Source: Macrostomum lignano (taxonomy: Eukaryota). Taken from it: DNA of 64,000 nt. Made by a program: the position numbers and the translations under genes. The stretch covers positions 62,001 through 126,000 of the forward strand of contig NIVC01002770.1 of assembly GCA_002269645.1 (NCBI GenBank), written 5' to 3'. Of this stretch, positions 16,813 through 19,800 are shown one piece after another; position 1 is the first letter of the stretch; every line of letters starts with the position of its first letter. The notes below the pieces were generated by a model. That model saw only the letters and a program-made list of their open reading frames with translations. It did not search any database and was not told the origin of the DNA.

Positions 16813-19800
16813 ATGTCGCACAGGCTGCTGCCGAAATTCGTGTCCAGCGCGGCCAGCCGATTTCAGCGCTCCGAGTCCGAGCCGGCCGCGCATCGGACGG
16901 AGGAAGCGCTGAGCAACGGCGGCGCGGAGATCCGGGAGGCGCTGCTGCGCCACGTGAAACGGGAGGTGAAGCAGCTCATGGAGGAGTCGGTGGCGAGGAA
17001 GTTTATTCACGAGGAGAGCTCAGTCATTACTCAGCTGTGCGGTGAGGCTTTAATTATTAATTTGTTTATAAATTGGCAGGCTGCCAAGTGGGTTTCATTG
17101 ATGCAGACCCAGCCTTGTATAAACATCCCAATCAGTGAGGTGTCAATCTGGCGTATGGGCGTTACTAAGGAACCGATCTGACCCCTAATAATGGCGTCCA
17201 TCTGTCACTTGAATATTTAAAAACTGTTACTTCGATGAGATTTTCGTTACTATAGTGGGCCACTAACACTCGTATACTACTGACTGTACCAGGGGCGTCG
17301 CCAGCGAGGGGGGGCAGGGGGGACATGTCCCCCCCCAGTAAAATCTATGGGGGGACATGCCAATGCTTTGTCCCCCCGACCCCACCTTGTGACCCGTTAT
17401 GGAAATCAATAATTTTGCGTCAGGGTGACAAAATTTAGCGCCTAAAGCATCACAATGAGTGCCTGCGGCGCCAAAATGAGTGCCTGCGGCGCACAAAACG
17501 AGCACTGACAACCCCGATTTTGTAAATAATGTACATGTAGGAATTTAGTCACTTACATGTACATGTAGAATTCTTGTCTTTGTCCCCCCCCCACCATAAA
17601 ATTCATGCGACGCCCCTGGACTGTACCCTTAGCAAAATTAGCTAGAATAACTGAGCCGGGCAGAAACGGGGCAGAGCAGCCTCAACTATTGGTTCATTCA
17701 TTTGAGGCTTGTGCGCACAGAGAGTGTACATGCCTGACGATTAGAAAGTCAGGGCTGCTGTACACCCTGTGTGAGCGTGTGTATGAGTGCGTGTCTGTGT
17801 ACAGTATTGACGAGCTTGCATGTGCTCAGGAGCCAGCGGAATGGGCAGAATTGCTTCAGCATTGCGTCAGGATGCCCGCAGTAATGTGATAATTAGTAAT
17901 AATAGTATTAAGCCAATAGGAGCAACTATTTCCTTCCAGCCAGCGTAGAGAACTGCCTGCTGTACGGACTGAAGCGCCAGAGCCTGCTCACCGGGGTGTT
18001 CAGGGAGAACAGCACCCTGGCGCTGCTGCACCGGGTTGCCAAGTCCTGCCAGCCGGCCAAGCACGTGCTGGACCGTCTGGCAGCGGATGCGGCCAACGGC
18101 GGCCAGACTGGCGGGGGTCGCCAGCGAAAGTCGAGCAAACTGCAGAATCCGAGCGCCGCTCCGCAGCCGGCGAAATTTCACTGGATTCGAGTGGCTTTGC
18201 TGGAGAAACGGCTGGCAAAGATTGTTGAGCACCTGGTTGAGCAGGGCAAGCAGCTCTACGAGGCCAATAGCATCATTGCCGATCCCTGCGACGGACCTCT
18301 GCTGGCTTCGTTGCTGGGTAAGTCTGGATGGTGAAAAGCGGGGCCGGGGACGACTCAAGTAAAAGTACGTTCGGGAAAAATTGTTTCTAAGAAAATCTAA
18401 AATCGCCGGCTTCACACCAATAGTAAAGCATTTGGACATTTTCAATTTTTCAAGCTCAATTAACGATCAGTTCATTTTTTTACAATTAAAAATGAAGTTT
18501 AGTCTGTTTACTAGCAATCTTCGCCCCCCGATGGGGGACATCTGGATAGAATCTCTGTTCTTTAAAAGTAACAAAAAGACAGCGAAATGAAGCCTTCACA
18601 AAGACAACAGACATTCCCTCTAAAAAGAAAACATCCCCAGACAGCAAGCATCCCCCAGATAGCAAGCATCCCCCAGATAGCAAGCATCCCCCAGATAGCA
18701 AGCATCCCCAGACAGCAAGCATCCCCCAGACAGCAAGCATCCCACAGATAGCAAGCAACCCCAGATAGCAAGCATCCCCCAGATAGCAAGCATCCCCCAG
18801 ATAGCAAGCATCCCCAGATAGCAAGCAACCCCAGATAGCAAGCAACCCCAGATAGCAAGCATCCCCCAGATAGCAAGCAACCCCAGATAGCAAGCATCCC
18901 CCAGATAGCAAGCATCCCCCAGATAGCAAGCATCCCCCAGATAGCAAGCATCCCCAGACAGCAAGCATCCCCCAGACAGCAAGCATCCCACAGATAGCAA
19001 GCAACCCCAGATAGCAAGCATCCCACAGATAGCAAGCATCCCCCAGATAGCAAGCATCCCCCAGATAGCAAGCAACCCCAGATAGCAAGCAACCCCAGAT
19101 AGCAAGCAACCCCAGATAGCAAGCATCCCACAGATAGCAAGCAACCCCAGATAGCAAGCAACCCCAGATAGCAAGCATCCCCCAGATAGCAAGCATCCCC
19201 CAGATAGCAAGCATCCCACAGATAGCAAGCAACCCCAGATAGCAAGCATCCCACATGTTGTAACCCGGGTCGGCTTGGGTGCCCAGTCCCGAGTACAATA
19301 TATATTATATGTGATATAACAGGCGTTGTGACGCTCTGTCTGTACTTTTATGAATACGACGAGCAGGCGTGGCGACGCTCTGCGATAATAATTCGATCCC
19401 TCTGGTGTTGTGACACTCAGAGTTCACGCTGCGGCTCGAGGTGTGGTGACACTCTCGAGTGCTTCTATTCTCTATACCGTAGGGCGTACGCAATATATAT
19501 GGTAAACGGTACCGTACTACAGAAGCTATATGGTCTCCCGGCGTTATGACGCTCTGGCAAGAATTCGGCCTAGCAAGCTTCCCGAAAAGAAAGGACTCAA
19601 ACAGCAGGCGGCTTACCAGTGGCCAGATGACTGTTCACCGTTTATTATTCGCAGGTCTCAAGCGCAGTTTCCGACTTCTTCTTAATTCTCCAAGACTCTT
19701 CTCACTTAGGCTATTGTGTTTCTTTTATCGAAGTAGCTAATGTTGCTGTTTCTTTTATCGAAGTAGCTAATGTTGCTGTTTCTTTTATCAGGTCTCGCGC

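Follow-up and report, generated by a model that had tools for sequence, protein, structure and literature searches.

What would keep one small hairpin, present five times within a single insert, folding in the same way while most of its letters change? The question arises from a 64,000-nt stretch of Macrostomum lignano DNA (assembly GCA_002269645.1, contig NIVC01002770.1, positions 62,001 to 126,000), which is referred to below, at its whole length, as the window; unit coordinates are those of its plus strand. The window contains an 899-bp insert that is well supported as a solo long terminal repeat (LTR), and between 19319 and 19557 this LTR carries five short stem-loops built on one plan. 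Outside a common core, the five units have diverged to near-randomness while their outer stems have stayed complementary. These observations support the view that the shape of the hairpin, and not its sequence, has been maintained by selection in all five copies. The purpose of this shape can be named only tentatively: the hairpins may form an array in the leader RNA of the element, to be recognized by the element's own Gag or nucleocapsid protein.

The module common to the five units consists of a variable lower stem of 4-6 bp with an invariant closing G-C pair, one bulged base, an upper stem whose length is fixed at 4 bp (G-Y-G-U / A-C-R-C), and a loop of four bases, the first of which is constant on the minus strand. 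No variation is seen in the bulge, in the pair that closes the lower stem, in one loop base, or in three upper-stem pairs out of four. In the order lower stem, bulge, upper stem, loop, upper stem and lower stem, all on the minus strand, hairpin 1 (19319..19339) reads ACAG A GCGU CACA ACGC CUGU, with a folding energy of -8.0 kcal/mol and a score of 36.3 bits under a covariance model of the five units. Hairpin 2 (19363..19383) reads GCAG A GCGU CGCC ACGC CUGC (-9.6 kcal/mol; 33.4 bits), hairpin 3 (19400..19422) CUCUG A GUGU CACA ACAC CAGAG (-9.3 kcal/mol; 38.8 bits), and hairpin 4 (19435..19459) CUCGAG A GUGU CACC ACAC CUCGAG (-11.9 kcal/mol; 34.6 bits). The last, hairpin 5 (19537..19557), reads CCAG A GCGU CAUA ACGC CGGG (-5.3 kcal/mol, z -1.4; 33.8 bits) and contains a single lower-stem mismatch, which is C/T on the plus strand. 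As minus strand, each unit thus exposes a CRYM loop and an A bulged on its 5' side; read as plus strand, it has a G-rich KRYG loop and a bulged T instead. Folded alone as RNA, every unit gives the hairpin described on either strand, with energies from -5 to -13 kcal/mol, and every unit also folds as DNA (-3.9 to -7.6 kcal/mol, z -2.1 to -3.6).

On the plus strand, the core common to the five units is GGYGTKRYGACRCTC. The pattern GYGTNNNGACRCTC was found six times in the window, compared with 0.13 expected matches, and none of 100 shuffled sequences reached six. This pattern was derived from the data itself, so a sequence-blind scan of the architecture was added, in which a lower stem of at least 4 Watson-Crick pairs, a 1-nt bulge on either side, a 4-bp upper stem, and a 4-nt loop were required. 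Only seven sites appeared in the 64 kb. Four of them fall inside 19319-19457, a span of 140 nt, with the bulge on the identical side, and unit 5 was missed solely through its one mismatch.

The covariation of the units carries the main conclusion. The five units, which are paralogues of a single sequence, were aligned in register and scored against the named structure of 10 base pairs. Standard pairs occupy 88% of the pair cells; when the 3' arms were redealt among the units, the fraction fell to 72%, and no trial out of 500 did as well as the real units. With the 3' partner displaced by 1-3 columns, 32-48% of the cells remained paired, as against 88% in register. Both sides have changed in 5 of the 10 pairs, including transversion swaps from A-U to U-A and from C-G to G-C, and the upper-stem change from C-G to U-A is concordant between the arms in all five units. 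The same helix was recovered when RNAalifold was applied to the aligned units. The 15-nt core has a pairwise identity of 0.83. For the outer lower stem, taken as three positions per side, the value is 0.38, and the flanks and spacers, at 0.26, are at the random level.

A sequence-only reading of this DNA had placed five such units at these coordinates, with covarying lower stems, an invariant bulge, upper-stem length and tetraloop size, and unique spacers. All of these claims were borne out, each unit lying and folding as described (unit 5 with its one mismatch). The same reading had cautioned that the upper-stem change might reflect CpG decay; this caveat carries little weight here, as the observed/expected ratio of CpG is 0.74 in the window and 1.35 in the hairpin region. 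A chance origin is excluded by the pattern count, the pairing controls, and the architecture scan taken together, and a core identity of 0.83 beside a spacer identity of 0.26 requires either selection or a very recent conversion limited to the core. The invariance of the bulge, the upper stem, and one loop base points to a reader that contacts these features and ignores the sequence of the lower stem. The sole trace of homology among the spacers is AATTCG, which stands in a similar position after units 2 and 5 (19384-19399 and 19558-19570); it fits an origin of the units by duplication.

Interrupting a single satellite, the insert that carries the array is unique sequence from 19256 to 20154, and its inferred strand is minus. 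It is flanked by a 4-bp target-site duplication, CACA, on the left (19252..19255) and on the right (20155..20158). When the insert and one CACA are removed, the satellite variant ...CATCCCACAGATAGC... is restored, and this variant is present elsewhere in the array. The insert starts with TGTTGTA and ends with CACTACA, and differs by one mismatch, at one end, from TGTTRNR...YNYAACA, the integrase-recognition consensus of retroviral and animal Ty3/gypsy LTRs (PMC3601003). The assignment to a solo LTR, proposed earlier from the letters alone, is well supported because the 4-bp target duplication, the LTR-type ends, and the restored satellite phase agree. The 899-bp unit has no terminal direct repeats and no long inverted repeats, blastn against the window returned its self-match alone, and no retroelement coding sequence adjoining the LTR was found in the window. 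The target of the insertion, a satellite with an 18-bp unit CAGATAGCAAGCATCCCC, extends over 18635-19252 and 20157-22501 (about 3 kb); it contains 17/18-bp variants and shows higher-order periods of 35, 53, and 88 bp.

A solo LTR has no primer-binding site by which its orientation could be fixed, and the direction of transcription must be read from internal signals and from folding. The only AATAAA hexamer in 19256-20154, a candidate polyadenylation signal, is on the minus strand (19641..19646); none is present on the plus strand. Downstream of it on the minus strand is the G/T-rich stretch GCCGCCTGCTGTTTGAGTCC (19593..19612). The TATA-like element CTATTTATG (minus strand, 19867..19875) is nearly palindromic and gives weak evidence of strand; a CCAAT box (19941-19945) and a GC box (19951-19957), also on the minus strand, lie about 70-80 nt upstream of it. 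Read along the minus strand, the order is therefore GC box and CCAAT box, TATA-like element, about 220 nt containing a 30-bp tandem repeat, AATAAA, and the GT-rich stretch. The tandem repeat (2.4 copies, 100% identity; minus strand, 19717..19789) lies in what would be the R (repeat) region, and the segment 19846-20154 is 69% G+C. The order of signals along the U3-R-U5 (unique 3', repeat, unique 5') regions is conserved, and so is the presence in LTRs of a GT-rich stretch behind the poly(A) signal (PMC3601003). The promoter and poly(A) motifs follow this order on the minus strand, each alone being near chance frequency.

Folding in context also differs between the strands. In the minus-strand fold of 19310-19565, all five local hairpins appear in both the minimum free energy (MFE) structure and the centroid (z = -3.19; 0 of 200 shuffles), whereas in the plus-strand fold three local hairpins are lost to long-range pairing between units (z = -1.64). 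The longer stretch 19255-19640 shows the same trend, with z -3.32 for the minus strand and -0.84 for the plus strand. On the strength of these motifs and predicted folds, the LTR probably lies on the minus strand, which would place the hairpins in U5. The U5 would then span about 365 nt, from just past AATAAA to 19256, with the hairpins inside. The claim of the sequence-only reading that the hairpins are downstream of the minus-strand poly(A) signal thus stands as far as the single AATAAA and the order of signals are concerned; the orientation on which it depends has modest support, with about 0.3 AATAAA expected by chance.

If the LTR is oriented in this way, a mechanism may be proposed. One hairpin module would have been retained by the element lineage as five paralogues. 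The array, lying in U5, would be transcribed from the upstream LTR alone, so that the full-length RNA would have it in its 5' leader. The five local hairpins would follow one another there, each exposing a 5' bulged A and a CRYM loop, and together they might serve as a multivalent platform for a protein that reads the bulge, the upper stem, and the loop while ignoring the sequence of the lower stem. The most probable partner would be the element's own Gag/nucleocapsid, choosing the full-length RNA for packaging. We give a probability of roughly 0.3 to the reading in which the five hairpins are a multivalent 5'-leader RNA array for this protein, with a role in the selection of genomic RNA. The more specific proposal, that each of the five homologous A-bulged tetraloop hairpins in U5 binds one copy of capsid or nucleocapsid and that the array is a kind of cis-signal new to retroelements, is a little more doubtful. 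A precedent for the principle exists in RNA phages and other viruses, whose capsid protein is recruited by a number of stem-loops that have a motif in common but otherwise differ in sequence (PMC6281560).

Known systems of two kinds may be compared with this proposal. The leaders of retroviruses and LTR retrotransposons also contain short hairpins with small apical loops and bulges, in RNA that is derived from the LTR or adjacent to it, and the hairpins there are recognized by Gag/nucleocapsid or by regulatory proteins. Hairpins have been reported in the leader of Ty1. In long R regions, conservation of stem-loops has been described (PMC3601003). The known leaders differ in that their hairpins are non-homologous and are mostly located in R or downstream of the primer-binding site, whereas here one module is present five times in an inferred U5, with lower stems that covary.

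The second system is the operator or packaging signal of the MS2 type, which resembles the LTR units in having a small apical loop, an A bulged on the 5' side, no fixed sequence in the lower stem, and a motif common to its several copies. The spacing between bulge and loop in MS2 is unlike the 4 bp of the LTR units. The MS2 motif comprises (x)xYA in the loop and A as the 5' bulge (PMC6281560). All five minus-strand units have the bulged A, but xxYA occurs in three of the five loops (CACA, CACA, CAUA) and not in CGCC or CACC. In addition, the MS2 signals are part of the genome of a single-stranded RNA phage, in which the cognate coat protein is also encoded, whereas the present units belong to a eukaryotic LTR in an animal satellite, near an IQCH-like gene. 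Membership in the phage-operator family was rejected on both the loops and the context. The comparison with phage coat-protein operators, already drawn in the sequence-only reading, consequently survives in the bulged A and as an analogy of design only.

Several points weigh against recognition of the array by Gag. The covariation is drawn wholly from five paralogues in one sequence, neither the element nor the array having been found a second time, and unit 5 combines a mismatch with a weak fold. The locus does not supply the partner protein, being a solo LTR without genes. The orientation rests on generic motifs, among them a nearly palindromic TATA-like element, and AATAAA is found 42 times in the window on the two strands, from which the expectation of about 0.3 per strand in 899 bp follows. 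No G-U pairs, which would discriminate between the strands, occur inside the stems, and beyond the stems a wobble extension is possible for unit 1 if read as minus strand and for unit 4 if read as plus strand, which gives no strand preference. Double-stranded DNA contains the palindromes just as well, and single-stranded DNA can fold into them. At about 365 nt, the U5 would be unusually long, and in the well-studied retroviruses the main determinants of packaging lie downstream of the primer-binding site and not in U5.

The same leader RNA might instead be read by another partner, either a transactivator acting on nascent RNA in the manner of TAR (the trans-activation response element) or a host factor for export, stability, or translation. 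The structural evidence is identical for such a reader and for Gag. Bulged stem-loops of the LTR-derived leaders of complex retroviruses recruit regulatory proteins, which favours this explanation. An array of the same layout is also established in a host mRNA: the 3' untranslated region (UTR) of the transferrin-receptor mRNA carries five iron-responsive elements (IREs), which, like the LTR units, have an invariant bulge and loop above variable but paired lower stems, each bound by one protein. The IREs differ from the LTR units in loop size, bulge identity, and upper-stem length, as well as in their setting. Elements of the TAR type act at the very 5' end of the transcript, whereas the array would begin about 280 nt past the likely start site, as judged from the inferred signals, and downstream of AATAAA; a TAR-like element at the transcript 5' end was therefore rejected.

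A further argument against a leader regulator comes from Rfam. At gathering scores, no match was obtained in the window, and in 19200-20200, with E-values up to 10, there were four noise matches (three microRNA families and one frameshift-element family, E 3.8-9.1), none of which overlaps the hairpins. Identity with the IRE or with another curated RNA family was rejected in the absence of a covariance-model match. On balance, a reader of the leader other than Gag is considered unlikely.

Equally unlikely, in our estimate, is that the units are double-stranded, near-palindromic sites for a dimeric transcription factor or repressor. With the LTR on the minus strand, such sites would follow the start site; with the LTR on the plus strand, they would form the upstream U3 enhancer region, and the explanation is more likely in the second case. 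Arrays of repeated cis-regulatory motifs are common in LTRs, and the invariant positions of the units make up a core of 15 nt, as a DNA site might. In the plus orientation, the array would occupy 64-302 of 899 and the TATA-like element would stand near 613, as is typical of LTRs with a long U3. There is also a precedent in maize, where Sirevirus LTRs hold about seven palindrome copies in their upstream cis-regulatory half (PMC4728375). A dimeric DNA-binding protein is nevertheless disfavoured because the sequence of the half-sites would then be conserved rather than their complementarity; in the units, the outer lower stems are 38% identical and yet complementary, with double changes by transversion. 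The one-base asymmetry of the arms has moreover been kept in all five units. The plus strand of the LTR lacks AATAAA, and no convincing fit to the units was found among the known transcription-factor motifs considered.

The Sirevirus palindromes themselves may also be compared with the units. In these Ty1/copia elements, conserved 8-nt arms surround a single central base, with the consensus CACCGGACtGTCCGGTG, in the upstream half of the LTR (PMC4728375). Both cases present several short palindromes in one LTR, capable of forming hairpins, in a fast-evolving region around conserved symmetric motifs. In the Sirevirus case, the arms are conserved and the host is a plant, whereas in the present case the arms covary around a 4-nt loop with a fixed bulge, in an animal host and an inferred U5. 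No match to CACCGGACtGTCCGGTG was found with up to three mismatches. An array of the Sirevirus type was rejected, as the motif was not found and the arms covary.

It is quite improbable that the units have no function at all, being copies of one ancestral palindrome whose arms were kept complementary by template switching within quasi-palindromes, in the course of reverse transcription or replication, or products of chance. The evidence is limited to one sequence, and the AATTCG common to two spacers agrees with duplication. Template switching does correct inverted repeats towards perfect palindromes, which would favour this explanation, but such correction would erase the bulge, and the bulge is present in every unit. 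Chance is excluded by the results given above.

Somewhat more improbable again is that the hairpins act in single-stranded DNA, namely in the minus-strand strong-stop DNA, where nucleocapsid, reverse transcriptase, or integrase could see them during strand transfer. If the element is on the minus strand, the plus strand of the window corresponds to strong-stop DNA; the units fold as DNA with the energies already given, and covariation suits any intramolecular pairing equally. Nucleocapsid proteins favour exposed G and single-stranded loops containing T/G, which supports this possibility. Against it, the plus strand in context trades three of the five local hairpins for long-range pairs (as computed with RNA parameters), and we know of no element with such an array in its strong-stop DNA.

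The least probable explanation is that the palindromes are a substrate of host defence, with LTR hairpin RNA giving rise to small RNAs that silence the family, a role that has been proposed for the Sirevirus palindromes: the palindrome-rich region of Sirevirus LTRs does form hairpins and is a hotspot of small-RNA matching (PMC4728375), but stems of 8-10 bp are far below the known length of small-RNA precursors, a feature serving the host would not be maintained by compensatory change in the element lineage, and microRNA families matched at noise level at most.

Relatives of the array were sought in the window and beyond it. A window scan with the covariance model of the five units returned those five and one weak site at 37860-37892 (20 bits). 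At this site, where unique DNA borders a 29-bp minisatellite, the 14-nt core of hairpin 1 recurs exactly, in inverted orientation. The site lacks a lower stem, and its wider similarity to the LTR (local score 28) is within the shuffle range; the match is probably a coincidence, though an exact 14-mer is unexpected. Between units 4 and 5, a larger hairpin of 66 nt (19461..19526, minus strand) is predicted in both the MFE structure and the centroid of the minus-strand fold and would fill the long interval there. Inside it, GCGTACGC (19484-19491) corresponds to both upper-stem arms abutted without a loop, and is possibly a collapsed sixth unit.

A 146-aa frame within the LTR (19706-20146, minus strand) has no exact record and no homologue in the protein collection. 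A DNA pattern of two hairpins gave 71 viral matches, which is approximately the calculated chance number, a pattern of three hairpins gave no matches in viral contigs, and a 30-mer around AATAAA gave no viral matches. Three metagenome matches and one prokaryote-genome match to the three-hairpin pattern were rejected, all being perfect tandem repeats in unrelated prokaryotic DNA. One metagenome contig, the prokaryotic Ga0116180_1000816 (4614-4760), has three tandem units with the 15-nt near-palindrome of hairpin 4, GGTGTGGTGACACTC, followed by three copies of CTGAGGAATGTCACACATCCG; these look like a regulatory repeat cluster unrelated to the LTR. The nearest IQCH-like proteins in the collection are 47-52% identical, and relatives of fast-evolving LTR DNA are consequently not expected to be findable there. 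No description of a comparable U5 hairpin array was found in Rfam or in the literature searched. Structured leaders of LTR elements and palindrome arrays in LTRs are already known; five homologous, covarying, bulged tetraloop hairpins in an inferred animal U5 were not found described.

The surroundings of the LTR contain a gene and scattered remnants of mobile elements. The IQCH-like gene (8827-12369, plus strand) encodes an IQ motif and an IQCH-type ATP-grasp domain in three long open reading frames (ORFs), which are in different frames and separated by gaps of about 160-180 nt; the gene is intron-poor. The best database matches for an exon of this gene, at the identities just given, are from bowfin (a fish), lancelet, and tube worm. 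A reverse-transcriptase fragment (RVT_1; 1671-2471, plus strand) and a mariner-type transposase fragment (Transposase_1; 53811-54398, plus strand) are isolated remnants that share no sequence with the LTR. An ATG-started ORF of 431 aa (46172-47467, plus strand) shows a weak match to the rhodopsin family of seven-transmembrane proteins, below the Pfam cut-off, and has no exact record in the collection; another ORF (36040-36633, plus strand) weakly matches a fragment of RabGAP-TBC. The regions 15367-57018 and 63760-64000 are unusually dense in minisatellites, with periods of 9, 11, 14, 20, 22, 24, 28, 29, 32, 34, 39, 44, and 55. Long (TAGA)n, (GTCT)n, and (TGTC)n tracts are found in the same regions, and several of the arrays are strongly strand-skewed.

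How Gag recognizes genomic RNA is understood in only a few retroviruses and in Ty1 and Ty3, where the signals are idiosyncratic structures present in single copy. If the hairpins of this LTR are indeed read by Gag, the combination of an unconstrained lower stem with a bulge, upper stem, and loop that stay fixed would constitute a simple and countable recognition code, which could be read from sequence across the family. Packaging of a retroelement would then be tied to the principle of multi-site packaging signals known from RNA phages, and the array, situated upstream of the primer-binding site, would be a natural parallel to the coat-protein operator arrays of phages. Should the units prove to be DNA sites, they would provide an animal parallel to the palindrome arrays of Sireviruses. 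In either case, the way in which the five paralogues covary is, for a single LTR, an unusually clean indication of selection on structure.

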